A DNA stretch of 64,000 nt from assembly GCA_015680685.1 (NCBI GenBank), contig MNCI01002312.1:453652-517651 (forward strand). The letters run 5' to 3'. The translations under genes and the position numbers were made by a program. Within the stretch, counting starts at the first letter, position 1; every line of letters begins with the position of its first letter. Positions 1-64,000 of this stretch are shown in pieces. This DNA comes from Gnetum montanum (Eukaryota; Plantae; Gnetophyta). The notes under the pieces are model-generated. The model worked only from the letters and a program-made list of their open reading frames with translations, was not told the origin of the DNA and searched no databases.

Positions 1-23
1 TAGGGGTACCTCGCCACTCATCA
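1..23 (+). mobile_element. 3' terminus of an Athila-type LTR (element lies upstream of the window)
   Basis: TAGGGGTACCTCGCCACTCATCA matches the LTR ends at 7147, 18225 and 30087; no PBS follows, so it is a 3' or solo LTR inserted into the adjacent element. Confidence 0.85.
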
Positions 24-1150
24 GCTATCATAAAAGAAAGTTAGCTAACTTTGTCGAATACTATGAGTTGTTAAAAGTTCTTATTTATCAAATCACTTAG
101 TTTATATAGTCCCTAGAGTACACTACTTGAAACAAATGAAATCTCACAAAAATGCTTGAGCACAATTCTAGCAATCTACTCCTAATTTTCCCTAGAGAGA
201 AACTTCCATAAGAAAACTAAAAATAGAGATTTAATGGGTTTTAAAAAGACAAAAGAAAAGAAAGTATATTTGTTTGGGATCTCAAACATTTAAGTAAGAT
301 AAATTGACATGAGGAAACATTTCACAATAAAGCTATTCCAATTTAATCTATTATGAATTTTCTAAAACCTCTGAGCTTAACAAGCAATTTCATAAAAGTC
401 ATTTTTATNNNNNNNNNNNNNNNNNNNNNNNNNNNNNNNNNNNNNNNNNNNNNAGAACTTCCAAAAAAATTTGACAATTTTAAGATTGCAATATTAAGAC
501 AACAAATTTTAAAAATATAGAAGCTATTTTAGTCATTTCAAGGTATCAAAGATTTTCTAGATTTTCCTAAACTCAAATAGGCAATTTCTATAAGACATTA
601 CTATTAAATTACTCAAGATGCTTTTCTAATAAAGCATAACTCTTATTTGGCAAATCTTAATAGAAATCTAATGTTACACAAAAAATAGAGCTATAAAGGC
701 AACTTAGAAAAATCCAAAAATCAAATGGTAAGCACGATACTATCTAAACCATTAGCTAAGCAACTAAGATAAAATAGAAAGAAAAGAACTCATAGGATTA
801 AAACAAAGCAATTGAATTGATGAATTAGCAAGCCATCTTACAATCTTCAATATCTTTTTTCTTGATCTTCCACCAATTCCCCTCATTCTACCCATCAAGC
901 TCTTTCTATAATAGCTTAGGGTAGTTACAAACATTATGAAAAATTAAGGTGGATTACAAAAATTATGAGGGTTCGTTATAACCACCATAGAGTTAAATGC
1001 TATAGTCAACAAGTGTTTGGTAGCTACAACCACCATGGAGATTAAAAAGCTATAGTTGATAAGTATCTTATTTAGTGGTTAGAAACCATCATGGTAGTTA
1101 GTTATAACTACCATAGATATTTAAAAAATTACAATTGAGACTTGTCCATT
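24..1150 (-). repeat. Conserved LTR core (proximal U3/R/U5) shared with ~23860-25010
   Basis: Colinear matches, e.g. rc(TAATCCTATGAGTTCTTTTC) near 783-800 vs ~24193-24210 and rc(CATCTTGAGTAATTTAATAG) at 601-620 vs ~24368-24387; TATA-like TATAGAAA at 903-910 (-). Confidence 0.9.
409..452. other. Assembly gap (N run)
   Basis: Run of n. Confidence 0.99.
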
Positions 1151-1204
1151 TTTCTTACAAAATAGTTATATATATATATTATTTTCAATTTTAAAAACAA
1201 AGAA

Positions 1205-1752
1205 CGGGTCATAGCTCCAATCATTCACAATTTCTCTATTGCCATTATATCTTTCTTCATTGCAGCCTTAGAATCTTCAGAATTATGAATATCCACATAC
1301 GTTTCCCAAGTGGCTCTTCCATCGGCACTGCATACAATTTGCACATCACTCTTGCTAATATCGTTGTCTTCAAAGAAATCTACGATATCCTCAATAGTGG
1401 CAGAGAAGGGCTGTCCCCTGAGCTTCAGGACTCTAGTCTGCTTGGCCTTGTCCTTGCCTGCATCGTGAGATCTGCTTTGGAAGAAGTATAGTTGCCACCA
1501 TCGTTATGTCTCAAGTCTGCATGTTCGTTGGCTATGGCCTGATAGTAGTCCTGCTTCTTGGCACGGAAAACTTCAATGTAACGATTGCCCATGTTGTAGT
1601 GATCTTTCCTAAGAGCATACTCAACCTAAACAGAGCGCCAAATACGCAGAATTCCTCTCCGGTAAAACGATCATTCTTGTAAACAAGGAAAACATCAATA
1701 ACGTCAAGCCCGCTGAAGAAGTCACAGACATTATTTTCAATGCAGTTGAAAA
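1205..1752 (-). pseudogene. Captured fragment of plant hnRNP F/H-like RNA-binding protein (two qRRMs), frameshifted
   Basis: Translations FNCIENNVCDFFSGLDVIDVFLVYKNDRFTGEEFCV / VEYALRKDHYNMGNRYIEVFRAKKQDYYQAIANE / RVLKLRGQPFSATIEDIVDFF...DSKAAMKKD match qRRM motifs; no intron-like interruption. Confidence 0.85.
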
Positions 1753-1923
1753 TAATATTTCCATAGCGTAATGCCATCCCGGCAGGACCATGGCATTGAG
1801 GACTGCCACTTGAAACGTTTTTAAATGAGTACATCTGAACTCTGAAGTTATCTTTTATTTCTTGTCCAATGCTGCAGTCCTCAGCAGTTATCATCTGCAC
1901 TTCTATTCACAAACCAGAATCAG

Positions 1924-2139
1924 GTTGACGAGAATGCTAGCATCCACCATTATTTCGGCCACGATGCGAGCAACATGGTCATGAATCTTGTACATCTTTC
2001 CACTGGTTTTTGTGCAGGTGTGAAGCAGCTTCAACGCCACGCATTTCTTGCTGATGAGAACGACGCCATCCTTAACCACAATGTTGACAGTTGCATCTAT
2101 ATTGTCGATAGCTTCCAAAGCGTACTCCACTTGGTACTG
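1924..2139 (-). pseudogene. PAC1: Captured fragment of 20S proteasome subunit alpha-3 (alpha type-4)
   Basis: YQVEYALEAI...KDGVVLI...KLL...KMYKIHDHVA...IMVDASILVN parallels PAC1/PSMA4 YQVEYAMEAI...KMYKIDDHVACAVAGIMSDANILIN; both ends truncated. Confidence 0.9.
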
Positions 2140-2228
2140 CGAGTTAGTTGCAGATCGCATCCAAACGGAATGCCAAGCTTTGGCTAACTATATTCTAATC
2201 TTGCGGAGCATCCACTTCTTGGTGATGA

Positions 2229-2288
2229 TGCCGAAGTGAAGTTCACGGATAACACAATTGCCGTAGTGAAGTTCACGGGTAACACAAT
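2229..2288. repeat. 30-bp tandem duplication inside unassigned cargo
   Basis: TGCCGAAGTGAAGTTCACGGATAACACAAT / TGCCGTAGTGAAGTTCACGGGTAACACAAT, 2 mismatches. Confidence 0.9.
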
Positions 2289-5200
2289 TAAAACTTATGC
2301 ATGGAATCACCGTAGCTACCCAACTTTGATTAAGCTCTTTGAAATCATCATCCTCGTTATTTGAAATGCGTCACTTGATCAATACTGCAGTTTGCGGCAA
2401 CTTCTGAGATCAAGAACAGGACGTCATTCGGTTATGCGTATATCCCTCCCTTATAGTCGTACGAGCAAACCTCTTAGTAACCTTCATCAAATCTTGCAGA
2501 ACCTCCATCGACAAAGCCTCCATCTCCGTTATTTTCAAGAAGATTATTAATATCAACATCTATCACATTTCCTACATATGTTGAATCATTTGAACCTTCT
2601 TGAAGTTTTGAACTGTGAATTTCCTCTTTTTCAGCTTCTTCTATTAGCTTCTTTACAAGCTTAATACTGTGAACTATTAAGATCAATATGACAATCCTTA
2701 TTTTGATGAGGTGCCCATCTTTTGAGCTCTCTACTTAACCCTCCAGTTCTTAAATTTTGGAATAAAATTATGAACCTAGTTTTTCTTAACAATGACCATC
2801 ACTGCTCCATGAAATGGTAGAAATGTGCCAACACTAGCATAGTCACAAGCCTCCTCAATGTAGTCACACAATGAAAATGGAATTCGGCTTGTTTCTACCT
2901 CATAGTTTGTCAATGCAAGGTTACGAGAGGTCCTAGAGGAGTGTGGAGGTCAAAATATGGGAATTTAGAGTTTTTTATTTATTTTTGGAAATCCACCTTG
3001 ACCCAACTATGCTAGGACTATGCTGGCTAGCGTAGTTAGCGTCACCCCTGGCATGATTTGCAGTGTGCGATGGAATTTGACTTATTTTGGTTCAGTTGTT
3101 TGCTATTTCAAGGCTATCGGAGGTTCTATGGTGAAGTTTATGGTAAATTGTGTCAATTTAAGGCTATTTATGGTCATTTCTTCCTCAACTACTAGTGACT
3201 ATGCTAGCCAATGTAGTTGAGGCCTTCCTTAATGTAGTTTAAATAAGAAAATGATTTTTGATGGTTTTTGATAGGTTTTAGGCAATTCTGGAGCTACTAG
3301 AGATCTTGGTTAGGGTTTGGTGTATGGAGTTGTCATTTCAAATTCAATTGGGATTTTGGTTGATGTTTGAAAACATCTTCCTACTAGTGACTACATTGGC
3401 CAGTGTAGTCAAGCTATTGGTCAACATAGTTCCCACAAATGACATGTTTTGGCATGAGTTTGCCTGGTTTCCATCAATGTCAACACCTAGTTTTTGTTTT
3501 TGGCATAAGGTTTCATGGCATGGGTCGGTAGTTGGGAGGTTGGTTTAGGTAGTAATTGGGTTTTGCAATTCACTTCAATGCTTCTAGGTACTTGAAACCT
3601 AGCGTAATCACCCTAGAAAATTGAAAATCCAAGTGTATTAGGATTTCCGTTGGCTTTCTTCCTAGGCATCTAGTAGGATCCATCTTGAATTTGAAAATTT
3701 TTATGCATTAGTTTCCCACTCACCCAACATAGTCCTACTTACCAATTGTGATCATTGAGTTCAATGGGACTTGGGTGAGTGTTTTGGAAAACCAGGGTTT
3801 TCCAAGAGGATGCATAAGTATGGAAGTGATTTTCAAGAAACAACTTTACACAAATCATTCTCTTCCTACCACTTTCAAGCTCCAATGCCTTGGATCAGAT
3901 CTCTACACCTACTTCAGCACCTCCCACTTTCATCCCTGGTGTAGTTGAGGTTTTCACTCTAAGAGGCCAACATAGTTGCTTTAGAAGGCTTCAAATAACT
4001 ACTCCTACATTGATTACAACCATGTCAAGGAGATGGGCTTCCATCACTAAGAACCCTACTTTGGAAGACATTGATACTACTACCCATGGCCTCTCCAATC
4101 TACCACAACCCATGATAGCTAAAAACTCTAACACCATGATACCTAGGTATACATATTCTAGCCTTTTCTTAGAAAATTTCACTACAATCCTAGGCATTTT
4201 TTGTCATGATGGTTTGTGTGTTTGTTGTTTTTGAATTTTTTAAAAATCCTATGTTATATCTAGGCTATTTCTATGGGTTTCTTATGTTTCTTAGGTCATG
4301 GGATTGGTACATGTTGAATTAAAAAATTATTTCTACTAATTCTGGGCATTTTTCTATGGTTTTGGGCAAAAAAGCAATACCATTTTTGTATTTTTTTTTC
4401 CTATCTAAATGGTTTATATTTTTTGATTTTTGTATCTATATAGTTGTAGTACTATGTTTAATGGTCAAGTGAAATTTTGAATTACCTAATTTTGACCTAC
4501 AGTTTATTCTCTATGAATTTTTCTATAAGACTGTGCAGAGTGGGTTTTCAGTTTTAACTATTTTTATATGGTAATTTGGTAATTTTTCATGTTAGATTAG
4601 TTAATGATTTTTTTGTTTTAAGGTTGTGGGTTTTTAACTCTCTATTTAAGGATTCCAACAACTATAGAATCATGGAATTTGGATGTGTAGTTAATTTTTG
4701 GCGATTTTTTTTCCTAAACTCATGTGAAATGGGCTTTTATTATTACGGTTTGATTTATGTCACTTTAGTAGCGTTTTTTACATAAAAGGCTTGGAATTTT
4801 TATGATTTCTAGTTTTGGGTTTCTAAATTTTTGTTTCAGAATTCTAGAAACTATGGAATCATTGAATTTGGTTATGTAGTTGATTTTTAATGAATTTTTT
4901 GGTGAACTAGTGTCTAAGTGTTATTTTTTGGTTATGGTTTACTCTTGTGAAGATAGGTAGCATTGGCACTTTGGAAAATTTTTCCAGTCAATGTCTCAAG
5001 ATCTTGAGGAAGCTTTGAGGCTTTTGGGAGGATTTGCAAGTGGTTTCAGCTAAGTGAAAATTCCTTTTGATATTTTTTATTAGTTTTCTACTATGGCCAT
5101 TTTCCATAGTTTGGTGTTGTTGTGAAGTTTTCTATGGAGTGTTATGGTTTTGGTTGGAGTTTCAAATTTTTCCTAGGCTTGGAACTTCAACATAGATACC

Positions 5201-6253: not shown

Positions 6254-7147
6254 TGATGAAGTGTTCAATTGATACGTCGACTGGGCCGCATTAATGGAGC
6301 CTTCTTGATCCAGCCATGTTGACATGATCCTATTGACATATCCATCAATGCATTAATGCGACCCTGTTAATGTAGAGTCTGTCTCTTGCTATAAATATGC
6401 ATGCACCCATAGCATTTATGGCATCTTTTTGGTAGTTGTAGTGAAGCCGTTGTAGTTTTTTTACGTGTAAGTTAGAATATTTCCCAAGTGCCCGCAGCAA
6501 GTGTGAGAAAGTTGTATGACTCTTTATTCAAGTGCTATGTACCTAAGCCCATTAGCATGAGTGAAAATAAAGATGAGATTTTTGAACATTCCTTGCAGCA
6601 TTTGGATTTAATTACTTAAGCATTAAAACACTTTAATATTTTGACATTTTAAGCATTCCAAAGTGCTTTATTATTATTGCTTTATGGTTATTATCCTTTC
6701 CATATTCTATGAGAACCATAGGCATGACCATCTCAAACATATATCAAACACTTGGTAACCTAGTGATGCTTAACATCTAGTAACCCAGTAGTGGTTAGGA
6801 TATGCTCAAGATATGCATGGAAGATGGGATTGATTACTTATGCTAGGAAGAATTAAACAATAGAGTAGAAAAATTACAAATTACCCAAATTTCCATTTCC
6901 TACATTAAAAGAATTAGACCTTTAAAGATAAAAAGAAAACTGATAAAAATCATTTGCCTCAATCTCACTCAACCATCACTCTAGAATATCACAGGTGAGA
7001 TTGGGAAGACAACGACCATTCTAACTAAGGTTTTGCTAGCTAGATTTCAGTGTACGTAAGTGCTTGTAGTCTCCAAAATTTGACCAAGTTGTGAGTGAAT
7101 GCTCGTGATTCATATGGTTGGACGTAGGGGTACCTCACTACTCATCA
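6254..7147 (+). repeat. 5' LTR
   Basis: Direct repeat of 17334-18225; TATAAAT near 6390. Confidence 0.95.
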
Positions 7148-17100: not shown

Positions 17101-17333
17101 CCAGCAACTTCAACATTTCAATAGGGTTGAGAATCTATGGTTGTTAGGGTGTTTAATTCCATTGTCTATGAACATTGCAATTTTGTAATTTGGTTTGCCA
17201 TACACTAGGACACTTAATATGTTAATAGAGTTAGTGTGTGTGTAAATGTGTTTTGTTGTGTGTACCATCAATAACTTCATGCCTTCCAAATTGTAATAAA
17301 CTTGAGGATGAGTTTTCACTTAGTTGTGGGGTA

Positions 17334-18225
17334 TGATGAAGTGTTTAGTTGATACATCGACTAGGTTGGGTTAACGAAGCCTCATCAACGCAGCCACGTT
17401 GATGCATCACCGTCCACGTATCCGTCCATGCATTAACGTGACCTTGTTAATGCAGAGCCTGTCTCTCGCTATAAATATATGTGCACCTGCAACATTTATG
17501 GCATCTTTTTGGTAGTTGTAGCAAAGCCCTTGCAGTTTGTTTTCATGTAGGTTAGAATATTTCCCAAGTGCTCACAGTATGTGTGAGAAAGGTGTACAAC
17601 TCTTTATTCGAGTGCTAATGTACCTGAGCCCATTGGCGTGGGTGACAATAAAGATGAGCTTTTTGAACATTCTTTGTAGCATTTGGATTTAATTATTTAA
17701 GCATTAAAACACTTTAATATTTTAACATTTTAAGCATTCCAAAGCCCGTTATTATTATCACTTTATGGTTATTGTCCTTTTCATATTCTATGAGAACCAT
17801 AGGCATGACCATCTCAAACATATATCAAAAACTTGGTAACCCAGTGACACTTAACGTTTGGTAACCTAGGAGTGGTTAGGATATGCTCAGGATGTGCATG
17901 AAATATGGGATCAGTTGCTTATGCTAGAAAGAATTAAGCAATAGAGCAGAACAATTACAAATTACCCAACTTTCCATTTCCTACATTAAAAGAATTAGAC
18001 ATTTAAAGATAAAAAAACTGATAAAAATCATTTGGCTCAATCTCACTCAACCATTGCTTTAGAATATCACAAGTGAGATTGGGAAGACAATGACAATTCT
18101 TATTAAGGTTTTGTTGGCTAGAATTTAGTGTACGTAAGTGCTTGCAGTCTGTAGAATTCGACCGAGTCACTCGTGAATGCCCGTGATTCATATGGTTGGG
18201 CATAGGGGTACCTCACTGCCCATCA
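17334..18225 (+). repeat. 3' LTR
   Basis: Direct repeat of 6254-7147, preceded by PPT. Confidence 0.95.
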
Positions 18226-21200
18226 AAGGGTAAGCATGGTTTTAAGTTTTTGTTTTTGGCTACTGTAATTATTGGTTTTACTAGGATATTTGGTTTTAAC
18301 ATTTTTCTTGCTTGAATTTGTGTACTTATAGGTACAAGGTGGATGACAAGGGGTTCATCAAGCAGGACTAGCTTCTATTCTTAGTCCAAATAGCATTGGA
18401 GGTTTTTTCCAAAAACCCCATAGTAAGGCTTGCAGTGGTGGAGCAACTAAGAGGTGACTTGGGCAGGTACACCACATGTTACTCCAAAGCCTACCAATGT
18501 TTTGTAGCCAATGGGACAATGCATGGCTGGTGGGATAAGTCATATCTCATCCATATACCCATTGAAGGCCCCCTACAATCCTCTTTCAGCAAGAAAGGTA
18601 AGACTTATATTTTTGTTTATATTTCTATTTTCATGTCAACATTTTCATGGCTATACAATTGTAGGTTACTTAGGCTTTAAGTGTCTAAATAGTTTTAATG
18701 GCTATGTTTGACTATAAATTTGGTTTCAATTCAGTTATACTTTGTTATATTTTTTGTTTTATCTACCTATGCCTATGCTAATAAACCCTTTGTTATATTG
18801 TAGGTGTTAGCACCTCCTCCATCGTTGCACTTGTTATTTCAAGATTCTTTGAGGAGACTTTGATTCTCAAGTATGGAAAGGTGGATTTGGTGTAGCAATG
18901 GTTGGCTAGCAAGGTACCTAGGCCTATCCAAGAAAACATTGCTAATTCAAGTTTGCGTGATCCATTTTCCCCTAGCACCATTGTGTCTACCCTTGAGATG
19001 ATGAACAGCATTTACTCTTTGATCAAGGAGTGAAGAAGTTCATCATCCAAGTTCATGGTATTCTTGTTACCTTAACCATCAATGAATCCACTTTTAGTGA
19101 TCTCTTTGGTATTCCTCGTGAAGGCCTAAAGTTTGTCACTAAGGTGGGTAAAGATGTGGAGCACCAAGAGGAGGTGGAGGAGCGGCTAGGCACTCGATGT
19201 GATCATAACGGGTTGTCTTGTAGCCAATTCAAGGCTAAGGAGGCATATCCCTTATTCCACTCCTAGGGGTTCCCCAAGTTGTTGTCATAGGGAAAAATCA
19301 TGAGAATTGAACATGTGTGAACCATGAAGAATGTTATTTTGGAGGATGCTCAATTCAACTAGATTGGTCACTTAGTTTCTAGGCTTCATGGTGAAATCCT
19401 CAAACTCCATGACAACCTCACAACAAAATGCCACATGCATTATGCATTCTTCTCAACATATTTGAGGAGGTTCATGGAGTTCCTATTGGTGAGGAAGGAT
19501 GGAAAATGGGTAAGCCAATATCCATTCTAACTCTTCAAGCCATGTGTTAAACATGTTTATCCCACTATGTAGACTCAGAACCAGCCACAGGATGTTGGGT
19601 AGTCATCGTCTATTACCGCTAAGGCACTTAGTGGTAGGTGTTGTGTTTCCCTTGATAGCATGGGGATTCAGCCCTAGGTTATGCATGGAGATGTAGATCA
19701 GGCTAGGACATTATGAGCTGAAGCTGAGGATTTAGCTAGAGCCAAATTGAAGAGGCCCATGGTCAAATAGGAAGCACAAGTCATTAAGTAACCCTCCAAG
19801 AGTAGGTTTGTGGTGAGACTGGGCTCAATAAGCAATGTGGTCACAAGTATGATTTAACTTATCTCAGTTGTTTCACATTGTTGTATTTTATGTTATAGGG
19901 CTATATTGTTATTATAAGGCAAGATATACTAAGTTATGCCATGTTTTGCTCTTATTGTTGTTGTGGACAAACAACAAAAGTTAGCAGACCAAGTAACAAT
20001 AATAGATGTGGAGCAAAGACACCTAGAGGAGGAGATCCTAGAACACCATGAGGATGAAGGATTATCTAATTCCCATTGGATGACTTTGAGACCATATTCA
20101 ATTTCTCACAGCTCAGTTTACCACCTGTCATCATTTGAGAGGATGCTCCAAGTACGTATGCGTTTGTTTCATGTGTTTAAGTTATGTTGCTTTGTGCTTA
20201 AGCTTGGTCTTAATTGTTTATGGGTTGTTATGCTTACCTTAGATACTAAGCCATAGCCTACAACCTCCACCTCCACATTTGCATGAAGAAATGAGTGAAC
20301 ATTCTAAACAAGAGGGAGTTCACGTAGGGGATAGCAAAGGATATGATTGATCAATTGCATTAGGTTGCTCCCGATATGGGTAAGTACTTAGTTCATCTTG
20401 CACTTTATATTTTTTGCTTTATTGTTGTATTGTTTTAGTTATTTTGTTGTTTGTTATTCTTTGGCTATTTGGTTACTTATTGTTTTTGCTTATGTTTTAG
20501 TTTATGTTATTTTTAATACCTATGCTTAGATGAGATCCCAACCATCCCATTGAGATCAATGCCTTACCTAGCCTATCATCAAATGTAGAGAGTGTACCAC
20601 ATACGTTATATGAAAGTGCCACTGATTGTGCATTTTCATGTACCAAAAACTTCATGGGAAATTAAACATTCCAATGAGTTCCTATGGAAATGTGTTGTAG
20701 TGTTGGAGAAAGAAAACAAGAGACTAGTTGAGGTAAACAAAGATCTCAAGGATCATAAGGAATTCGTGAAAGCCCAAGTGGCTAATAGGAATTCCTTGTG
20801 AACCAAGGAGATCGAATGGGCACAGTACTAGAATGCCATCCATAGCAAGGTTACCCTTGCTTGGTAGGTTGCTGAATAGAAGCTGCAAATTAACTTGCAC
20901 ATGCGCAATACTAAGGAGTAGAGAGACTGTTGTGCTTGGATTCTTGAGTGGGATAGAGCATAGAAGGACCGCAAGAAGAAGTATAAGGCTGAGCATGAAG
21001 CTTACCTTAAGTGCTTAAAGGAGGAGTCCATCAATCAACGCAAGTTAGAGCTATTTGTGAGGGGGATTTAGGCAGAAGATGTCTTTGAACTATTTGAAGG
21101 CATCCTAACCATGGTTGGATCCCCATCTCCTAAGATGTCCATCACTACCACTTTTGGAGAGGTGACTACTAGGACATTTTCATGAGAGCCACCCACATGT

Positions 21201-21452
21201 ACAAACATTGATGACAACACCCTAACAAGTAGAAATCTTGGGGAGGTGGATTGGGCCCACATGACTGAGGAACAGATCCTCCATCATTTAGAGGTTGGTC
21301 TTTGAAATCTCTCACTAAAAGATGTTGCTTCTAGGCCCTTTGAAGTTTGCTTATTTAATTTTGTTAGCACATTTTGGTCATTTAATAAAGTAGGCTTTAT
21401 GAGATATATTCCATCCTTCTTTTTATGAATGCTACACGCTATTTTTTTGTGG

Positions 21453-21818
21453 GTGAGAAGCAAGGGACCTTTCTTGCTTTACAAAGACGAACATCAAAAG
21501 TGCTGCAGAATTAGGAGGGTTGCACCACTTACGTGAGCCCTTAAAGGCCTTAGGGCTTGGATAACTGGATAGCGATAGACCAGCTTAAACGTTCCTATTG
21601 TCCAAGTGGATCCATCGTTGAAGGGCTTGATGACGGTGTGGGCAGTCTATTTAAATTTAACCTACTAGCCAGTGTTAGCGGTGACATTTTAACATTGTCT
21701 GAAAATTATGGCGGGAAATGAATACTCCCGTCAACGCTTTGCATTCTCAGGCGTACGTTTCTATTGGATGCGAGCCATGCACAAGGTCACTGTTGCCGGG
21801 CAACCTGAATTAGAAGGA
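21453..21818 (+). pseudogene. APR: Captured 5'-adenylylsulfate (APS) reductase fragment
   Basis: VRSKG...HQKCCRIRRVAPL.*ALKGLRAWITG...VPIVQVDPS/EGLDDGVGSL.K...[20 protein letters not shown]; diagnostic plant APR motifs with frameshifts; absent from the ORF track. Confidence 0.92.
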
Positions 21819-21834
21819 GCAAATTGCATTACTT

Positions 21835-22222
21835 CATCAAACTTGAAAGTGGGCCGCTCCAGTCATGGAAAGTGTCTGTGAGATGGCAAGAAACAGACGG
21901 ACAGTCCTGCACAAGCTGGCGCATCATATTTTCAACATGAACCACCATGGCGCTTCTAACGGATTTATAATGCTCTAGTCTGTAAACGTCTGTCCGTCTG
22001 CGGTGGAAGTCAGTCTGGAATCTGCAAAGATCTGAGATCAATTCCCAGAGCATCTCTGCTCTGAAGAATTGGGTCTTCTCTATCATTGGTTTTCAGCAAC
22101 TCTACGTGGGCTGCTTCTGTGTTGACGAATGTGACCACTACACCTGCCTCTGCAATCTTTCGCACCAGCTGAAGCATCGGATTCATATAGCCCTGCAATG
22201 GAAACACAAACGCTACCACATG
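21835..22222 (-). pseudogene. Captured UDP-glycosyltransferase N-terminal fragment
   Basis: [19 protein letters not shown]...VTFVNTE...LQIPD and, after a frameshift, PSVSCHLTDTFHDW. Confidence 0.9.
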
Positions 22223-22476
22223 CCCGAAGTCTACAATTCAGTGACAATCCAGATTATGCCTACTTGAAGAATTTATTTCGTGAATTGTTTATTCGACAAA
22301 GTTTTGAATACGATTATGTTTTTGACTGGACCATCTTAAAGTACCAACAAGCACAGAGTTCTAGATCAGCGCCAAAACTTTTGTCGGTACAGCAAGATCC
22401 GGGTAGTAGAGCACTGCAATCATCTGCTACATTTGGTGCAGCTACCGGCACTGTTCATGAGCAAATTGAAGCTGCC
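22221..22476 (+). pseudogene. CK1: Captured casein kinase 1 C-terminal fragment
   Basis: [42 protein letters not shown]. Confidence 0.92.
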
Positions 22477-22550
22477 GAATTGCCAGAAAGGCTCAGTGCG
22501 ATGAGCTTTGTTAGATGTCCAATATCAGGCACAATAATCCTCTCCAAGCC
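22477..22550 (-). pseudogene. Captured single plant extracellular LRR (RLK/RLP-like)
   Basis: [25 protein letters not shown] fits LxGxIPxxIGxLxxLxxLxLxxN. Confidence 0.7.
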
Positions 22551-23029
22551 TTCCAGTTCCTTCATGACGAAAATCTCCGCAATGACTGGGATATTCTGTT
22601 GAATGGTGGAATGGTGCAGGAAATGGCACACATTGCAAACAAGCAAGAATAATAAAAAAGACTGCGTATCACTGTTGCGCATGAACAACCAGAATTGAAA
22701 TCAGGGGAACATGCTAATCCTGCAAGAAAGCAGCACGGATGCATCGGGCTCATACATGATCTACGCATTGGTGGATATCGTGGCCATGAATGTCGTATTC
22801 AGCGGTGGAGATCCCAACTACGTGGCTGTCCTTCCATCAGGATTTGCCATTTACCGGATGGCACGTGCTCACAACGTCCAGATTCTGATAAATTCTCGTC
22901 TATGACTTGCTCAGCCGGTGGTGTGGTGCTACTGTTGGAGGATCTCTTCTCACAGTAGCATTTCAGATTTTAGTTGATTCAGCTTCCACAGTGAAGCTTT
23001 CTCTTGGCTCCGTTGCAACTGTTAACAGT
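22551..23029 (+). pseudogene. Captured class IV HD-ZIP (ATML1/PDF2/HDG-like) C-terminal fragment
   Basis: [28 protein letters not shown]...CVSLLR...[48 protein letters not shown]...[15 protein letters not shown]...[11 protein letters not shown]. Confidence 0.95.
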
Positions 23030-23194
23030 CAAAATCCACTACCAGTGCTCAAGAGCTTGGCTTCATGCAAACACAGAAGCAGTGTAGATTATGGAACTGC
23101 ACAAATTATATCATTGAAGAGAAATTCTCAGATTCTAGAGGCAGAGCAACTGCAGATTGAAAGAGTTCTGTGAAGCGAAAGAAAGAAAGAAACA

Positions 23195-23601
23195 ATGGCA
23201 GGAACAGAGGCGGACGCCGTGGATTTCGAGCCAGAAGAGGACGATCTCATGGACGACGACACGGCAATGGATGAAGCTAATGCTAACACCGATGCAGCAG
23301 CTCCGGCTTCTGCTCTAACCCTGAACGCAACAATCGCTTCTCCGGTTGCGATTTCGAGTCACTTGATTCAGACGGCGGCCCTGGCCCTCAGATATGTATT
23401 GAAGGATGGATAACTTTGGTAACTGAAGTTCATGAGGAAGCACAAGGTGGTATAACAAATCTGAATGGAGCTGAGCTGTTAACGCAGACCATATCTGTTG
23501 ACTGGGCCTTCAGTAATGACCCTTTTAGGCGCAATACGGTCAAGAGGAGGTCACCACGCCGTGGTCATCGATCTAGGAGTCCAGCGAGGAGAAGATACTA
23601 G
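23195..23601 (+). pseudogene. Y14: Y14/RBM8A (exon junction complex) retrocopy, ATG to stop, two internal deletions; 3'UTR-like sequence follows to ~23800
   Basis: AVDFEPEEDDLMD, DFESLDSDGGPGPQ..IEGW, VHEEAQ, LNGAELLTQTISVDWAFS, RSRSPARRRY*. Confidence 0.95.
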
Positions 23602-23859
23602 ATGTCTTTGGCTATATCTCTACTTAGAGGCTTGCTGTAAGTGTTTATGTATGATTTTCATACAACTTTTTCCTGTAAGTTTTACATTTTTGTGGTGAGT
23701 CACCGTTTAAAAGTAAAGTATTAAGAAGCATCGTATGGCAATCCACACCTCTTAACATGTTTTTCTTATGTATTATTAATATGTACCTAACATTGACATT
23801 TGAACAAAGCTTTAAAATGTTATCGATAAAAGAAGAAGACAAAATTATGTGATAGTTAT

Positions 23860-25239
23860 TCAAAAGGACACTTTGGCAACTATAGTTTGTATTTCTATGG
23901 TAGTTATGATTAACTACCATGGTGGTTGTAACAAATTCTCATTAATTTCTATGGTGGTTATAACTAACTCCCATAGTGGTTATAACACACTTTAANAGTG
24001 TGTTATAACCACTATGGGAGTTAGTTATAACCACCANATCTCTCATGATGATTATAATTACTACGAAGCTATTATAAAAAGAGCTTCAAGGGTAGAATAG
24101 AAAGGAAAGGGGGAACTTGGAAGAAGACATATTAAAGATTACTTGTAAGAATGGCTTGTTGATTGCATCATCAATTCAAGTGCTTTATTTAAATCCTATG
24201 AGTTCTTTTCTTCTCATTTTGTCTTAGTTGCGTAGTTAATGATTTAGATAGTTTTGTGTTTGGTATTTAATTTTGAAATTTTCTTATTACTATTATAGCT
24301 CTATTTTTGCACAATTCTAGACTTTTGTTTGGTTGCCATATAAGAGCTTATGTTGTCTTTCGTAAAACATCTTGAGTAATTTAATAGTAATGTCTTTAAT
24401 AGTAATGTCTGAGTCTATAGAGTCTAGAAAATATTTAATATATTGAGTTGACTTGAAATAGCTTCAACTTTTAAAGTCTTTTCCTTGATGTCTCAATTTT
24501 GAAATTCATATATCTTTTCTTATAGTTCTAATATTTGCAATTCATGACTACTATTTAATTAGACAAATAATTGCTTGTATTTTTTTCATTTACAAATCAT
24601 TTTGGTAGTTTAATAAGTGTGTCTTTAATGAAATTGCTTCTTGAGCTTAGAGGATTTGGACAATTTGCAACACTTTAGATTGAATTGAAATAGCTTTATT
24701 TTGAAGTGTTTTATCATGTTCAATTTATTTTGCTTAAATATTTGAGATTTCACACAAATATGATTTTCTTTCTTTTTCTCTTTTAAATTTCATTGAATCT
24801 CACTCTATTTCTATTTTTCTTATGGATCTTCCTCTATGAGGAAAACTAGAAGTAGATTTATGTAGAATTGTGCTTAAGTATTTTAGTAAAATTTTATTTG
24901 TTTCAAGAAATGTACTATAGCTACTATATAGACTAAGTGACTTAACAAAATAGGAATCTTTAATGACTCACAATATTCAACAAGGTTAACTGAATTTCTA
25001 TTATAATGGCTAGTTTCAGTTTCATACACAAGCCTAAGCATTTTAATATTCATAATATCAAGCACACATTTACAGTTAGTTCACTCTATTACCACTAAGT
25101 TTATTTGGAGGTATTTAGGCATTGGTGTTTCAAGGGACTAATAAACACCTAAACTCAAGTTTGAAGGAACACCTTCATTTCCTATGATCCCAATCACAAG
25201 AGTGAAGGAACATGTTCGCAGTCCCAAATGGTCCCAACA
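23860..25239 (+). repeat. Conserved LTR core of copy R
   Basis: Inverted homologue of 24-1150; clustered GTT(A/G)TAAC motifs, then TATA box and purine-rich R-like segment. Confidence 0.88.
24073..24080 (+). promoter_or_regulatory. LTR TATA box
   Basis: TATAAAAAGAGCTTCAAGGG; counterparts at 903-910 (-) and 63922-63929. Confidence 0.65.
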
Positions 25240-25704
25240 TATTTATTTTAGTTTAATTTTTTAAAGTTATAGTTTAGTTTCATACTTTGTTGATTTTTGG
25301 TTAACTTGTGTTTTGTTGTGGTATAGGGACCAAGTAACACTGACAACCCTAGCAGAGAAGGTGGAAGTGCTCCTAAACCCCATCCAATAGCCCCTTAGTA
25401 CAATCTATTGGTCATTGCTCTATGGTTATTTCATTCATTTTAGTTATTGACATTATTTATGTTGTGATGTATTGGCTAGTGTTAGCCATCGATGTGTTGA
25501 GAGACAGTTTATTGTTTAGATTTCCATGGTTACTATGTTGTAGACATTAGATATTATTTTTAAATTTTAACTTAGTTTATATGTTCTAAAAGTTTAGTGT
25601 TTCATATATGTTTAATGCTCTACATTTTTGTTTATGTCATAGGCTATGTTGGTTAACTTGTAATATGAGAATAATGTAAACTAGGTTGTAATGGTTATAA
25701 GAGG

Positions 25705-29194: not shown

Positions 29195-30087
29195 TTATGA
29201 GTCATGATTTTTTTAGCTTTGATATTAGATATTCTATATTGGAGCATCAATATTAGATACATGATATTGAGTCCCAAGAAATGATGTCAGATATCCAATA
29301 TTGCCTCTTTTGTGCTAGCCTATAAATACAACACTTGGATGCATGGTTGAGAGAGTTTTTAGTTTTAGATTTCAATTAAATTTTTCATAGATTGTTGATT
29401 TCTAGTTCTATTATTTCCTAGTGCATGCCCATAGTGTGATGTTTGTAATTATATGACATCCTTATTTGAGTGTGATGTACTTGGACATGTTACATGATTA
29501 GAAATAAAGATTGAAATTACTTTTGTCATTGCAACAGCCACTTAGATTTATTATTGATTTTAATAATTTAATTTTTTAATTTTTTTCTATTTTCCTTAGT
29601 TAATGTTTCCATTTATTACTCTTTGCAATTCCTATCATTAAGCAGAATGAGTACGACTAATCACAAGCATTTAAGTGTAACTACTTGGTAACCCAGTAGT
29701 GTATCATTTGGTGAGCCTAATGATGTATGTTTGGTATTCTTAGTGGTAGATACATGAAGTCCAAGGCATGTGCGAATAATTAAGAATGGATACTCATCAC
29801 ACATAGGTGAGTTTAAACTTTACTTTCCATTGTTACTTAGCTTAATTAATTAATTTCTTTGTTATCATTAGGAGCAGCATAGGGTTAGACAACATCATCA
29901 TATGCCTCACCATGGACTAAATCATACATGATAAAGCTACTACTAGTTCAAGTGGGAAGACAATGAACTACAATCAAAGCATAATGATTTAGATGCAAAA
30001 CTAGTCTGATCAATGGAATTCGACTAGATCGTGCTTGAATGCTTGTGATTCATATGGTTGGGCATAAGGGTACCTCACCACTCATCA
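29195..30087 (+). repeat. 5' LTR
   Basis: First half repeated at 60993-61488; ends ...CCACTCATCA. Confidence 0.9.
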
Positions 30088-30229
30088 TTGGCATTGTTTC
30101 TAGGGATGGTGTTAGTTATCTACACTAGTTATATTATACACGATCACTATAAATACATTAATGATATATCTTTTAAAAAATAATAAATCACACACACCAT
30201 AAACCAATAATAATGTCTCTTTCTCAAGA

Positions 30230-32620
30230 AATAAATAATGCACTATATAACAAAAACATTCATAGAGAACTAACGAGATATATGTTGAAGAAAATTTGGG
30301 TGAACAACCTTATGTAGCAGTTTCATATGTTCATGAAGACCATGATGACACTCAAGGACTACATTCATCTAAGGTAGACAAGCCTAGAGGAGATGAAGTA
30401 ACTCTTGGACCAAGGGAGGCCTCAAGGCCATGACCTCCTCAAAGACTAAAAAAGATGTATCAAGGGATCCTGGGAAACACTATAGAAGCCATGGAAATCC
30501 TTCTAGTTCCTCATCTTCCTCTTCCTCTTCAACATCTAGTTTTAACAAAGATGAATTTAGGTATATTAACCAAGCTCATCATTGGCATCAAAATAAAAAT
30601 GAAAATAAAAATTGAACCCCTGTGAGAAATCAAAAATGTCAAAATGAACATAGAAAAAATCATCATAATCAAATGGATAGAAATAGAAATTTTCATCACA
30701 ACATGTTTGATGATGAAGAACCCTTGTTGGCCACTACAAGCCTAATTTAGATCATAGGGGTAGTTAAGATATCTCATAGGCATCACAAAGAGGGTTACTT
30801 ACCCAAGCTTAATATGAATAATATTCCTGAATTTGTAGGAGGCTATGATTTAGATCCACAATATCATCTCTAAGCCTTCCATGATGCTTGTGCTTTCTAC
30901 AACATTGAAAGTGGATGGGAAAAGCTTAATATTTTTCCTAGGATACTAATCGATCAAGCCAAAGTATGGTATAGATCATTAAAACCAAATTCAATCCAAC
31001 GGTGGTCCACAATGTTAGAACTCTTCAATAAGAAATAACAAACCTATGCGAGGGTGTCCAACCTAAGGAGATAGATCCAACAATGGAAGCAAGAACAACA
31101 TGAATCCTTGGACATGACCTTAGATAGATATTATTCCCTACTAAATAGATTCCCAAGCCATGGTTTCTTTGAGAAAAGATAACTTTTCCACATCATAGAT
31201 GGGATTCATAATGAAAAAAGGGAGATCCTTGGGATGTATGCCCCAAGTTAATTATGTGAGCTATGAATCCATCAAATCTAAGAGCTAATCAAGCATGTGG
31301 CCAAAGAATAAGGGGAGATATGCAAATGGGAGAATGTCAAGAAATATCACTAGGACCCAACTCCTCAAAAGAAGTAGGTTCACATTTGTGGTAAGGAGAA
31401 AGAAACTGTTCTTGATAAGGTGATTTCACACTGGCTCTTACCAATACAAACGTCTATCACTGAACTTAGACCAAAGTTTAATAGGATGTCAAAATAGGTG
31501 TATGACAACATTGCAACTTTGGTAAAAACTATAGAGAAGAAGGTCATGCAAAATGAGCTAGGTGATCACAATAAACAAAGGAGAAAAAACTAGGAAATAG
31601 CTAGGAACACTTTTCAGCAAACAAGAAAAATGGTAGAAGAAAGTGAGACTATAGAATGAACCATAGATGAAGACAATGGATGTGACATCTACATATATGA
31701 CCATTTGAAGGGCCACTACTTGATCTTGTTGCATCTACATGAGTATTGGTTAGATGCATTGAATCTAAAGTTTGTACAAAAGCACATGTCCAAGAGATTT
31801 TCTTTTCCACATTGTAATGATAGCCAGTTCCACAACCAATCATACTATCCTAGGGGGACTTATTACCAGCCTCAACACTATCATCAAACATAGTGGAAAA
31901 ACCAATAGTCATGGGGAAGGCCACCACCAAACTAGCCCTACCCTCCCTATCATCCAAAACTATATGGATATTATGTTTAACACCCCATTTCTCCAACCAG
32001 TTCTATGTCTTATACTTCAAATTGCCACTATGACTCTCCTGAGTACCATCAACCCATGACATCTCTTGAGGGATCACCACCTTAAACCTCTTACCATCCA
32101 TCTTGCCCTCAATATTCTCATACTCTATCTCATCACATGCCACTGCCAATGACATAGGAAGGTTTTTCACCACAATATCAATAAATGAATGCCAATTGGG
32201 CTACAAATGTGCATAAACATGTTGATACTAGTAGGTTCCCATCACAAACATAGAAATGTCCTTTCTTTAGGATAGTCCATAGGCAAAATCACAACACTCA
32301 TGGACCTACCACATCATCTAAACTAGCACAATGCCAATTTAGTGCAACACCTTCTTTTCCACAACCAATGTCCTCTGACCCTACATAAGGGCCGCCATCC
32401 ATTGTTACTGCAACATCCAACTATAGCAATGAATCTAGAAGTGTGGGGAGGCAAACAAATCCATGCATATCATATCATAATCAAGGGTGTAATCATGGGC
32501 CAAAGATCCATGATGTTAGCACACCCCATACCTTGACCCACCATACATTTAACAACTAAGTGTGTGAACAACAATTTTTCTACACAACTACTATGGCTCA
32601 AAAATGAAAGGTTACTAATG
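30230..32620 (+). pseudogene. gag: gag (decayed)
   Basis: Homologous to 8240-9750 and closely to 49930-52330 (-); no PR/RT/IN follows. Confidence 0.8.
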
Positions 32621-61488: not shown

Positions 61489-62486
61489 TGTAGCGACCGA
61501 AAACATTGGTGGCTAGAAAACACCAAAAGGTTGTCGGTCATGACAGTCTTAACCCCAGATCCATGCGAGGGTTGTGCTAGATAAAATGGAAATAGGGCAC
61601 CCTAAATAGTCTAGCTTATCAGACAGGGACTTAATCGGTGTTACTATAACCTTTTGCAAATTTTTAATTTGAAAGCAGTGCTTATAGGATAAAATGAAAT
61701 TTGTTGAATGCAGGAAGGTGATAACAATGTAAAATGTAGTGATAAAGATAAAAACAAAGAAAAAGTTATAGAATGCACCACTTCAAATTTATGACTTTAC
61801 TTTTCCAGGTGGATACAATTGGTTGTACAACACTAGGAAGCATACAGATCCCAAGAGTAACTAGGACATTCAAAGCAAGCCAACAATGTTCTTGAATGCA
61901 AACTCCAAATCCAACAATGCCCAGATGTCACAAAGCCAACTTGTTAACCAAATGCCAACTAAAAACAAGGGGGTTTGTTTTGCTAGCTGCTAACAAAATT
62001 TGTTAACTGCTCAAGTTTTCTGATTATGCGCAAAGGTGCTCAAAATTTGCTAACCCTTTGATCATTGCTCATCGGGGTATTTATAGGACCAAGAGCATGC
62101 AGAAGATGTGATTTGGATGCCATGTGTCTTGGGCCAGTGTTTACGTGTCTATGCTACATGGAAATGCAAGACTGATTGACGAGTCTACCATGCTGTAATT
62201 GCGTTATCAGAACTTGGAGATATGTGCCAATGGTTGAAACAGGTGTAGTGCATTGATGGCGTTATCGGTCCAATGATGTCTAATCCCCATTTTTGGAATG
62301 TGTTGGCACATTTAGCCATTGCATGGAATAGTTGGAATATTTTTTTTTTCAGGATAGCACAAATGAAGAAGTTTAGTATGGTGAGTTAACAGAAAACAAG
62401 CTAATATGTGAAGTGTTTTGTTGTTAAGTTGTATGGAAGCAAAATCAGAAGATTAAGGATCAGATTCTTTGCTATTAAAGGATACA
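61489..62486 (-). mobile_element. ~1-kb LTR (3' LTR of another element)
   Basis: Minus-strand TGTATC...GCTACA termini, TATAAATA at ~62078-62085 (-), PPT stub GGGAG (62487-62491, -). Confidence 0.7.
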
Positions 62487-62491
62487 CTCCC

Positions 62492-64000
62492 TGTTAAAGT
62501 TGACAATGTATTATCGGATTATTTAAATTGGATTAACTAAGGGTCAGGTTTAAAAATTAGATTGGCTATCGTAATGCCCTGCATACGAAGGAGGCAAGAA
62601 AAACGCAACTCAGGAAATCAGGGAAAATAATGGCCAACGCTGCATGCCAAAATGAACCAATCTTCAAACCTGCATAATGTAAACAAATTTAACACAAGAA
62701 TTAGATCTGAAGGCAAGTGCACATCAGAAAACAAAGGACTAGCGTATGCAAGCAAGAAGGGGCGACTAAAACGGCATCTGCACATTCATTTGCAGAAAGG
62801 AAAAATGAGCAGTTTGCCTCATAAACAAAATTTTACTCAGCTCAACACCAGAAGAAAGGAAAAAAATGCGTGTAATCTTGGGTATATTTTAAATCAAAAA
62901 AATATATCAAAAGCTAAAAGCCCTATTCCTGCAGTATTGCTGATTGGCCAACAGGTTCAATGCTTCAACTGACGGAAATTCGGAACAGTCGCTGTACAGA
63001 GACCCAAAACCCTTAGCATCAAAGACCATTCCAGAACACCATTGTTGCTACAGATTTTGTGCATTGGCTGCGGGCATCAAAACAATCTGGCCTTTGAACT
63101 GCCTTTTGCCCACCGAGTTGAGTGCAAGCTACCGTGGCAGGAGGATAACCGAACGTGCAGAACCGTGACATCAAAATTGTTGGTATTTCCAGAGGACGGT
63201 TGCAGATCTAGGCAGAACACATGGTGGCATTTCCAAGTCCGGCGGCAGGGCATTCTCCAATGGAGGCAGTTGCTGAAACATCTTCGGACAAGAATTTGGT
63301 TGCAAGATCTATGGCTTCACCTTCGGGCTCGTATTTTCGGTATTCTGAGTTTTTGAATCGCATAAAGTTAATCACCACTACTTTAAAAAGGGGGGAAGAT
63401 TAAATTAGATTTTCCTAACATCATTATAACTTAGGGATATTTCATTTAGGAATTTGAAAATAAAATAAGCTAAATTAACCAAATATTTTACTAAGCAAGA
63501 CTTACAAGTAATTGCCCAATAAAATTGCATTAGATTACATTAGAAATATTATAAATTACATCTCTACTTATGAGTCTCATGTGTCAAATCCTGCAATAAA
63601 ATACTTTGTTATGAAATATTCATGAAATACCTTATGAAAGGGAACATATGGCTATTTATATTTGTAACTAAATTCTAGCATTTTTTATCTCCTTGGTGGT
63701 TGTAACCATCCAAAATTATTGTTGTAACTTACCTAACTAGTTGGATAAAAATATCCTAGCTTGTTGGGCAAGTAAATTTTTAATTGGATAGTTCAATTAC
63801 TTAGGAGTAAAGTTAGCTAGGATATTTAATAAGTAATCTCTCATTGGCAAACCAAGTTACTTGGGAGATAAGTTAGGTGAGATATTTTCAAAATGTAACT
63901 TCCCTACCTACCTTTGAGCCCTATAAAAAGGCTTCAGGGGTCAAGAGGTGAGGAGAGGGGAAGCATCAAGGAAGTCTCACATCACACTTGGAAGATTTGT
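62492..64000 (+). mobile_element. Probable third cargo-type large LTR, running off the window
   Basis: Starts TGTTA within the neighbour's PPT; CpG-retaining non-TE-like sequence at ~62570-63360; GGTGGTTGTAAC and TATAAAAAGGCTTCAGGGG motifs resemble copy R. Confidence 0.5.

Follow-up and report, generated by a model that had tools for sequence, protein, structure and literature searches.

How did one mobile element come to hold pieces of several host genes, and what kind of element would carry them? The question arises in a 64,000-nucleotide stretch of DNA (the window, analysed as a whole), in which positions 21362-25239 form a discrete 3.9-kb mobile-element insertion that starts with TGTTAGCACATTT and ends with AAATGGTCCCAACA, giving TG...CA ends. 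A first-pass annotation, made from the sequence alone, had read it as a solo long terminal repeat (LTR) filled with captured genes. The outline that it drew reappears in our analysis: a 3,878-bp insertion with TG...CA ends, whose 5' end recurs in two further copies; a 16-bp imperfect terminal inverted repeat, with 12 of 16 positions in agreement; a target-site duplication matching at 4/5 positions; and a TATA box at 24073, where TATAAAA is kept in all three family copies. The features of the insertion (copy 1) are as follows.

21357..21361 (no strand): left copy of the putative 5-bp target-site duplication, AATTT (4/5 against TATTT)
21362..21450 (+): conserved block at the 5' terminus, putative U3 attachment end for integrase; begins TGTTAGCACATTT and includes the 16-bp inverted repeat; first ~35 bp common to three copies
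21451..21817 (+): APS reductase (APR) fragment, frameshifted (PF01507, E 2.5e-5)
21818..22221 (-): UDP-glycosyltransferase (UGT) N-terminal fragment, antisense to the element (plant UGT structures, residues ~13-56, E 1.3e-5)
22222..22485 (+): casein kinase I (CK1) fragment, end of the kinase domain and C-terminal tail (rice CK1 3sv0 residues 254-316, E 3e-20)
22486..22686 (-): tentative LRR fragment (about one repeat) and ~125 bp of other transcribed sequence (LRR receptor kinase, E 0.01)
22687..23030 (+): HD-ZIP IV fragment (PDF2-like C-terminal domain), frameshifted (PF25797, PDF2_C, E 9e-20 and 4.5e-7)
23031..23844 (+): near full-length copy of the spliced Y14/RBM8A mRNA (RBM8A match, E 6e-8)
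23860..24069 (+): start of the conserved family core, with repeated CTATGGTGGTTATAAC-type motifs and an 85-bp palindrome (23952-24036), from sequence comparison and read depth
24070..24079 (+): TATA box TATTATAAAA (TATAAAA from 24073), putative LTR promoter, kept with its flanks in copies 1, 2, and 3
24100..25239 (+): AT-rich conserved remainder, putative R-U5, ending AAATGGTCCCAACA; 75-78% identity to copy 2 over ~870 aligned bp
25240..25244 (no strand): right copy of the putative target-site duplication, TATTT (4/5 against AATTT)

The duplication is imperfect and comes from the only complete copy available; because the flanking DNA is AT-rich, with an estimated chance match of 3-10%, it is weak taken alone. 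Self-BLAST of the insertion revealed a 68% internal duplication at 24269-24726 and the 85-bp palindrome but no direct repeat of LTR type, and no transposon domain was found in the ORFs tested, in line with the earlier description of an insertion lacking both direct repeats and transposon coding sequence. Within the 64-kb window we saw neither an empty paralogous site for the flanks nor an intact element, a paired LTR copy, a primer-binding site, or gag-pol of this family. Rfam detected no RNA gene in the window, so Cassandra-type cargo (5S or tRNA) is absent.

A mosaic of spliced host-gene fragments

About 2.4 kb of the insertion consists of exon-only fragments set end to end, and this cargo lies within the TG...CA unit, 5' of the conserved TATA box, just where the first-pass annotation had placed it. 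Of the genes counted there (at least six, plus a separate unassigned piece), five are confirmed, namely APR(+), UGT(-), CK1(+), HD-ZIP IV(+), and Y14(+), whereas LRR(-) is only tentative. The supposedly unassigned piece at 23031-23194 probably belongs to Y14 as its 5' UTR: it is covered by the same RNA-seq reads as Y14, and molecule ends accumulate at 23051 and 23068. This leaves five confirmed genes and one tentative, not at least six plus one.

Pfam gave no match for the short UGT, CK1, LRR, and Y14 ORFs; PDB sequence searches identified UGT, CK1, and Y14 where Pfam gave none, and offered no support for a second UGT ORF. The LRR identity of the piece at 22486-22686, which is covered by RNA reads, is suggestive. 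Translated ORFs indicate that the APR fragment reaches further upstream than its PF01507 match. A UGT-like contig begins to fit at 21818, which therefore marks the APR/UGT junction; the fit of parent-like CK1 DNA contigs ends at 22485 in all three runs, and 22687-23030 is matched in one block, at ~90% identity, by a 3.3-kb contig of organism E. A protein search with the 134-aa ORF that crosses the CK1/LRR junction returned only distant CK1 fragments, recovering neither the ORF itself nor sister copies.

The Y14 piece runs from 5' UTR to 3' UTR in ~780 bp without introns, comprising a probable 5' UTR (23051-23194), a CDS (23195-23601), and a 3' UTR, followed by an A/G-rich run (23826-23844), perhaps what is left of a poly(A) tail; its RNA coverage fades by ~23811. 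Compared with the RNA reads, the CDS has three internal deletions: 12 nt of a tandem repeat are absent after 23273, a second deletion lies at 23315/23326 with a 10-nt filler site, and the third lies at 23437-23446, where the 10-nt direct repeat GAAGCACAAG fits either side. Deletions at a tandem 12-mer, a filler site, and a direct repeat are as expected from copy-choice. The cargo as a whole is supported as spliced, RNA-derived material. LINE retrocopies each carry a poly(A) tail and a 7-20-bp duplication; here the partial fragments abut with neither tails nor duplications at the joins, and two of them (UGT and the LRR-like piece) are antisense, which does not fit LINE-mediated retrocopies inserted singly.

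We aligned DNA and RNA reads over 20900-23995, a span from the left flank to the core start. Almost the whole of 21420-23811 is covered by parent-gene RNA-seq reads, which leave the flank and the core start uncovered. Parent-like reads differ at 13 or more positions per read over APR and at as few as one over UGT, and only one RNA read reaches at least 99% identity anywhere in the aligned span. Over this span copy 1 looks silent, the RNA coverage coming from diverged parent genes. Since copy 1 looks silent and its cargo is broken, no host function is implied.

Could the mosaic be chimeric cDNA joined into a repeat during library construction or assembly? The assembly is a draft, with a gap of 45 Ns at 409-453, and single Ns stand at 23996 and 24037, around the palindrome at the core start. 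Yet contigs from two independent studies, under two organism labels, bridge several mosaic junctions and the cargo-core boundary at 99.5-100% identity (X1 across 22479-22731 and 23705-23923; X3 across 22375-22741 and 23716-23923), and the same architecture occurs in three copies. The mosaic is not an assembly artefact, an explanation we regard as extremely improbable. One contig of organism B crosses two junctions at only 97% identity, where its neighbours are 100% identical, which may point to another copy sharing this mosaic.

Constant ends, variable middles, and copy number

Three family members lie within the window, copy 1 and two that run past its edges.

1..2833 (-): family copy 2, reaching past the window start; same 5' terminus, TGTTGGCACATTT, at 2833-2821; core at ~1121-23
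62301..64000 (+): family copy 3, reaching past the window end; same 5' terminus, ~1 kb of GC-richer middle, core start, and TATA box at ~63920

The ~35 bp at the 5' end are common to all three. Copy 2 shares the AT-rich core with copy 1, of which it has ~1.1 kb, and its region equivalent to the palindromic repeats folds with z = -2.5; of the core of copy 3, only the start and the TATA box are visible before the window ends. An exact 22-mer from the most conserved core block had no match in metagenome contigs. Pairwise comparison shows the three middles to be unrelated, with no cargo in common. The copy 2 cargo (~2750-1225) includes a proteasome alpha subunit fragment (7qve_j residues 17-90, E 2e-19) and apparent hnRNP F/H-type RRM pieces, among others; the PDB sequence search gave no support for the RRM pieces and no protein identity for the middle of copy 3. 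Copy 3 is additional to the members listed in the first-pass annotation. In this repeat family the ends are fixed, and the middle, stitched together from pieces of spliced host mRNAs, differs in every copy seen.

Read depth separates the ends from the middle. At 21435 the 5' block is present in 26 contigs at a depth of 272, where a single copy corresponds to ~5-7, and the core start reaches 860-4100 in three DNA runs, while most cargo bins lie at 12-60. From this contrast, we estimate tens to hundreds of copies of the core start but only a few of the cargo, and the ends exceed this cargo in abundance by a factor of tens to hundreds. One bin within UGT (22148-22251) is multi-copy at a depth of 210-750, so the cargo is not low-copy throughout. 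Loose contig ends fall exactly before 21362 in 12-14 contigs and before 23894 in 21-29 contigs; the sequence upstream of 21362 is heterogeneous and purine-rich, with low agreement (0.48-0.52), meaning many different loci. Together with the three window copies, the recurring boundary at 21362 turns the proposed discrete mobile insertion into a multi-copy family. We also considered an LTR that starts at ~23849, after the A/G-rich run at 23826-23844, leaving the cargo internal, and rejected it: two other copies and the 12-14 contigs repeat the TGTTGGCACATTT terminus seen at 21362, and the A/G-rich run, coming after the Y14 3' UTR, resembles a poly(A) remnant.

Variable middles between constant ends might also arise after integration, if double-strand breaks at a fragile site, the palindromic repeat region of an LTR upstream of its TATA box, were repeatedly repaired and the gap filled with patchworks of cDNA or DNA, so that the cargo itself never transposed. 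Plant filler DNA consists of abutting fragments in both orientations without linkers, which is how the cargo is arranged; the palindrome lies on the side of the core nearest the cargo, the copy 1 mosaic is low-copy, and every copy seen holds different cargo. Against such filling, exon-only cargo with a nearly whole spliced mRNA and repeat-mediated deletions suggests the work of reverse transcriptase, all three window copies have their insert in the same slot and always retain the ~35-bp terminus, and the 97% contig hints that one mosaic exists in two places. We consider cargo added after integration unlikely.

Identity of the unit and origin of the cassette

The last ~14 nt upstream of 21362 in other copies read ..GGATGGAAAGAAA and ..GGGGGGAAAAAAA in two runs, as consensus sequences rather than single loci, with purines at 12-13 of 14 positions. 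A purine-rich consensus of this kind would be expected where a polypurine tract adjoins 3' LTRs, and this polypurine-tract-like sequence 5' of 21362 would set the orientation and put the cargo at the U3 end. Together with the TG...CA ends, the inverted repeat, the ~5-bp duplication, and the asymmetry of the unit, it indirectly supports a retrotransposon LTR. Two points count against an LTR: none of the three window copies has a polypurine tract in front of it, and R plus U5, if the TATA box is the promoter, would be ~1.1 kb, which is long. The solo LTR of the first-pass annotation is thus borne out in its ends, inverted repeat, and multi-copy unit, while its LTR status has indirect support, paired LTRs and gag-pol being absent from what was seen.

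A nonautonomous cut-and-paste transposon of the Pack type, with 13-16-bp terminal inverted repeats, could instead have picked up retrocopied sequences. It would account for the inverted repeats, for the lack of long internal direct repeats, and for three window copies that stand alone, all without an upstream polypurine tract; fixed ends around variable cargo are also the pattern of Pack-MULEs and Pack-CACTAs. We nevertheless find this very unlikely, given the extreme asymmetry of the ends (~35-90 bp on one side and 1.35 kb on the other), the oriented TATA box, cargo of spliced mRNA rather than intron-bearing genomic DNA, and the purine-rich consensus upstream of other copies; moreover, we know of no plant TIR superfamily that combines TG...CA ends with a 5-bp duplication. 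The solo appearance could also be primary rather than a product of LTR-LTR recombination, if the unit derives from a retroelement of another kind, for example one inserted as a lone LTR-like DNA, or one that is nonautonomous and truncated at its 5' end. No paired copy is seen in the window, as this would predict, but the promoter lies downstream of the cargo, so that the element's own transcript could not regenerate the cargo without a two-LTR mechanism, and the upstream consensus implies internal regions beside many copies. A primary solo unit is, in our judgement, quite unlikely.

We favor, at a rough probability of 60%, a solo LTR of an abundant LTR-retrotransposon family whose U3 cassette was built during reverse transcription, with capture preceding integration. 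The hypervariable cassette would form the 5' part of U3, between the ~35-90-bp attachment block and the enhancer/TATA core. After first strand transfer, reverse transcriptase would copy U3 leftwards, switch away from the element RNA close to the structured repeats that precede the TATA box, and copy pieces of co-packaged host mRNAs or their cDNAs, jumping between and within host templates at microhomologies or template ends, before regaining the element RNA ahead of the polypurine tract. Only products with the U3 terminus, polypurine tract, and promoter would stay mobile, which in this proposal is why the cargo always sits in the tolerant U3 slot; with U3 copied into both LTRs, its cargo would be duplicated at each retrotransposition and outlast solo-LTR formation. 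The antisense UGT and LRR-like pieces are not predicted by simple RNA-to-RNA copy-choice, and would therefore need cDNA or antisense-RNA switching, or joining at the DNA level. A stronger version, in which U3 is a template-switch hot spot and most replication cycles swap the cassette for a fresh patchwork of packaged host mRNAs, is possible but doubtful.

Gene capture by LTR elements is usually described as rare, single-gene, and internal. If the favored reading is true, fixed ends and a repeat-internal slot with a different spliced multi-gene mosaic per copy would mean frequent, position-specific copy-choice in reverse transcription, and exon sequence would be duplicated twice per insertion, upstream of a promoter, and outlive solo-LTR formation. 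Such cassettes could explain part of the very numerous captured exon fragments in giant plant genomes, and the family would be a natural system for studying template switching and RNA packaging choice. Should the hot-spot version also hold, hundreds of LTRs would form a genome-wide engine that copies, shuffles, and disperses exons next to a promoter. They would be the retroelement equivalent of Pack-MULEs and Helitrons and would capture genes at rates far beyond those of any LTR element described so far; exon shuffling, epigenetic conflict, and small RNAs that act across on the donor genes could be among the consequences.

Comparison with known systems

Pack-MULEs, Pack-CACTAs, and Helitrons resemble this family in having fixed termini and variable multi-gene cargo in both orientations, but they carry intron-bearing genomic fragments, whereas the cargo of 21362-25239 is spliced. 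Pack-MULEs have long terminal inverted repeats and a 9-11-bp duplication, Pack-CACTAs have CACTA ends and a 3-bp duplication, and the cargo of both consists of genomic fragments with introns; copy 1 departs from both in its termini, its ~5-bp duplication, and its spliced cargo. Helitrons begin with 5' TC, end with 3' CTRR after a hairpin, and insert between A and T without a duplication. Copy 1 has TG.../...CA on one strand and TGTTGGG... on the other, which does not fit a Helitron either.

Closer in kind are Bs1 of maize, in which the cargo is internal, between the LTRs, and the other LTR transductions found in rice, sorghum, and maize surveys: as proposed here, LTR retroelements hold reverse-transcribed host gene fragments. 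Internal transduction of the Bs1 type does not fit copy 1, where the cargo lies between the conserved 5' terminus and the core, inside the TG...CA unit and without a second repeat; at least five genes are found inside this terminal-repeat unit, and they differ between copies. The accepted capture model for LTR elements is template switching among co-packaged RNAs (PMC13317346), and a maize survey found no LTR retrotransposon with fragments of more than one gene (PMC2774510). Bulk multi-gene capture by transposons has since been reported in gymnosperm giga-genomes, with ~400,000 captured exon fragments per genome, LTR retrotransposons among the hosts, and on average 13.7% of host elements carrying fragments of two or more genes (PMC13477047, 2026). 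The parts of that BLAST census available to us describe no position-specific U3 cassette, no family with constant ends and a variable middle, and no spliced mosaics (PMC13477047).

The first-pass annotation knew of no described family with this layout. In the literature searched we found neither a hypervariable multi-mRNA cassette at the U3 position nor the term "Pack-LTR," so the statement holds for the layout; it holds less well for its parts, as bulk multi-gene capture is published and host sequence inside an LTR has a precedent in Cassandra. The Cassandra TRIM carries a 5S rRNA gene inside its LTRs, MMTV carries sag in U3, and the U3 of Tnt1 is hypervariable. Cassandra and sag are precedents for extra or host-derived sequence inside an LTR that is copied into both LTRs, but each is one fixed, conserved, functional insert, whereas here every copy holds a different, broken multi-gene patchwork. 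The Cassandra family also appears in PMC7215508, and in the chimeric LTR of BARE-2, template switching brought foreign sequence into the LTR (PMC13317346). In Tnt1 and BARE-2, as proposed for this family, U3 is the fast-evolving, swappable part of the LTR; in them the swapped material is regulatory or retrotransposon sequence, whereas here it consists of mosaics of host mRNAs.

Structure and cargo of the insertion

We find that copy 1 (21362-25239) is a discrete insertion in repeat-rich plant DNA, opening with TGTTAGCACATTT and closing with AAATGGTCCCAACA, which bears out the TG...CA ends and imperfect 16-bp terminal inverted repeat reported in the first-pass annotation; 12 of the 16 bp match, and the flanking 5-mers are AATTT on the left and TATTT on the right. 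Read together, the flanks resemble one short intron (GT...AG) from a high-copy element, with the insertion splitting it, and they reach a depth of ~500-5000 in public DNA contigs. The host sequence around the insertion is part of a very high-copy element: a 69-bp block there (21234-21302) reaches a depth of up to 5370, and the majority of other copies diverge on both sides of it (agreement of 0.63-0.79 in the consensus of the loose ends, i.e., places where contigs of other copies cease matching the window); the block has the look of a conserved, exon-like segment adjoining a variable intron.

Copy 1 falls into three parts by GC content: a 5' block (30%), a middle holding the cargo (45%), and a 3' core (29%). 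Self-BLAST returned no LTR-like internal direct repeat, as had been noted from the sequence, and the only internal matches are a duplication at 68% identity (24269-24726) and a palindrome of 85 bp (23952-24036). The palindrome is near-perfect and consists of a CTATGGTGGTTATAAC-type motif; one N falls at its center (23996) and another at its right end (24037), and it may reflect either a genuine inverted duplication or a local error of assembly. The equivalent site of copy 2, a second family member, instead carries this motif in direct repeats. Rfam identified no RNA genes in the window.

Host-gene fragments in the middle of copy 1
APR: PF01507, E 2.5e-5
UGT N-terminus: minus strand; plant glycosyltransferase structures, E 1.3e-5
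Casein kinase I (CK1): residues 254-316 of rice 3sv0, E 3e-20
LRR-like piece: antisense; single repeat, E 0.01
HD-ZIP IV: PDF2_C, E 9e-20 and 4.5e-7
Y14/RBM8A: E 6e-8

Of the six or more captured genes first proposed, five are confirmed by these database matches (APR, UGT, CK1, HD-ZIP IV, and Y14), whereas the LRR identity is only suggestive. When public data were aligned to 20900-23995, the fit of a UGT-like contig starts at 21818, CK1-like contigs cease to fit at 22485 in three runs, and 22687-23030 is matched as a single block by a 3.3-kb contig of another organism.

Oligo-dT RNA-seq reads from the same species span nearly all of 21420-23811, only 1 of 1754 over 20900-23995 being at least 99% identical to the window. 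Identity to the cargo, taken from the cleanest read per stretch, ranges from roughly 91% for APR up to ~99% for UGT and CK1, and within the aligned region no reads fall on the flank and almost none on the start of the core. The reads therefore derive from diverged, expressed parent genes, and the entire middle is thus exon sequence; copy 1 itself looks silent in this RNA sample over 20900-23995.

The stretch 23031-23194, previously set apart as an unassigned piece, is covered by reads whose ends cluster at 23051 and 23068 and is most simply the Y14 5' UTR. The Y14 copy spans ~780 bp without introns: it begins near the mRNA 5' end, takes in the stop codon as well as the 3' UTR, and finishes with an A/G-rich run (23826-23844) that may be what is left of a poly(A) tail. 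Compared with transcripts, it carries three deletions:

After 23273: one unit of a tandem 12-mer missing
23315/23326: segment missing
23437-23446: segment missing; 10 nt (GAAGCACAAG) match either side

Such repeat-guided deletions are the kind of product made by polymerase copy-choice.

The mosaic is real and not an artefact. Contigs of two public DNA data sets, from two studies and under two organism labels, bridge its junctions at or near 100% identity: those of X1 cross 22479-22731 and 23705-23923, and those of X3 cross 23251-23444, 23484-23668, and 23716-23923. One further X3 contig (22375-22741) is 97% identical across two junctions, CK1/LRR and LRR/HD-ZIP, and may represent a sister copy with an identical mosaic. 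Differences between the window and the DNA contigs over 20900-23995 comprise ~110 each of C>T and G>A, ~80-90 of A>G and T>C, and ~13-28 of each transversion, a transition excess of the sort that deamination of methylated cytosines would leave in repeats.

Family members with constant ends and differing middles

Three family members lie within the window, copy 1 and two others, the last absent from the first-pass annotation:

Window start, cut off there; 5' terminus 2833-2821; minus strand: copy 2, terminus shared with copy 1
62301-64000, cut off by the window end; plus strand: copy 3, identical TGTTGGCACATTT start and motif-plus-TATA core start

The 5' terminus common to all three is ~35 bp long, and the core of copy 2 is 75-78% identical to that of copy 1 over ~870 aligned bp. 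Comparison within the window reveals no cargo overlap among the three copies. The middle of copy 2 is unrelated to that of copy 1; it contains part of a proteasome alpha subunit (7qve_j residues 17-90, E 2e-19), and we also read in it putative hnRNP F/H-type RRM pieces, to which a database search added no confirmation; the middle of copy 3 is ~1 kb long and GC-richer.

Closer relatives of copy 1 match up to ~21450 (26 contigs, depth 272 at 21435). Depth is ~270 at the 5' block and 860-4100 at the core start, a figure inflated by repeated motifs there, against mostly 12-60 in the cargo and 5-7 for single-copy contigs, so that the ends are tens to hundreds of times commoner than the cargo of copy 1. 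The exception to low-copy cargo is the UGT bin 22148-22251 (depth 210-750), which is multi-copy in three genomes, with an A>G at 22189 common to 21-31 contigs; it either stems from a UGT clade with many close members or is a piece spread by other elements.

The window holds other repeats as well. A direct pair at 6253-7147 and 17333-18225 (~895 bp, 85.5% identity), spaced 11 kb apart, may be the two LTRs of an old element from a different family. Two direct ~2-kb blocks (36720-38740 and 57835-60002), both starting as tandem arrays with a period of roughly 95 bp (36780-37470; 57866-58860), share ~72% identity, which is low for two LTRs of a single element. The inverted repeat 29684-32528 versus 50014-52858 (2.9 kb, 76% identity) consists of two oppositely oriented copies of one element family.

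LTR identity and the origin of the cargo

We consider it probable that the unit is an LTR, given its TG...CA ends, short inverted repeat, and putative ~5-bp duplication. The unit is strongly asymmetric, with a short 5' block versus a long core, and an oriented TATA box in the core is conserved in all three copies. In 12-14 other copies, the sequence 5' of 21362 varies from copy to copy (agreement 0.48-0.52, below that of every other loose end), and its consensus closes with a purine run, ..GGATGGAAAGAAA in X1 and ..GGGGGGAAAAAAA in X3, as a mix of solo LTRs and 3' LTRs with a polypurine tract would give. This run would set the orientation and place the cargo at the U3 end. A polypurine tract is absent before all three copies in the window, and neither paired LTRs nor a primer-binding site or gag-pol of the family turned up in the 64-kb window or in the public-data alignment over 20900-23995. 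The R-U5 would be ~1.1 kb, which is long for such a region.

The best explanation, to which we assign a probability of about 0.6, is a solo LTR whose U3 cassette was captured during reverse transcription. After first-strand transfer, reverse transcriptase would copy U3 toward the polypurine tract and, near the structured repeat region (folding z = -2.5 for its counterpart in copy 2), would quit the element RNA for stretches of co-packaged host mRNAs. It would switch templates at microhomologies or where templates end (the Y14 fragment seems to reach its mRNA 5' end) and return to the element RNA inside the final ~90 nt of U3. Mobility would be confined to products retaining the terminus, polypurine tract, and promoter, which would explain the fixed cargo slot. 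The antisense UGT and LRR-like pieces would need an extra step, namely a template switch to first-strand cDNA or to antisense RNA, or joining at the DNA level; these two pieces are also the main ground for supposing that the cargo is filler DNA added after integration, an origin we regard as unlikely.

Comparison with known systems

LTRs are able to carry or swap sequence, as seen in Cassandra, whose LTRs contain a 5S gene, in MMTV, whose sag is located in U3, and in Tnt1, whose U3 is variable. The name "Pack-LTR" was not found in the literature searched. In a maize survey, no LTR retrotransposon carried pieces of two or more genes (PMC2774510), and in a 2026 review capture by LTR elements is illustrated by template switching, Veju, and BARE-2 (PMC13317346). 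According to the available part of a 2026 gymnosperm census, there are ~400,000 captured exon fragments per genome, with at least two fragments in 13.7% of host elements on average and several genes combined in some (PMC13477047). That part of the census (PMC13477047) describes no position-specific architecture, unlike the fixed slot that characterizes the family here.
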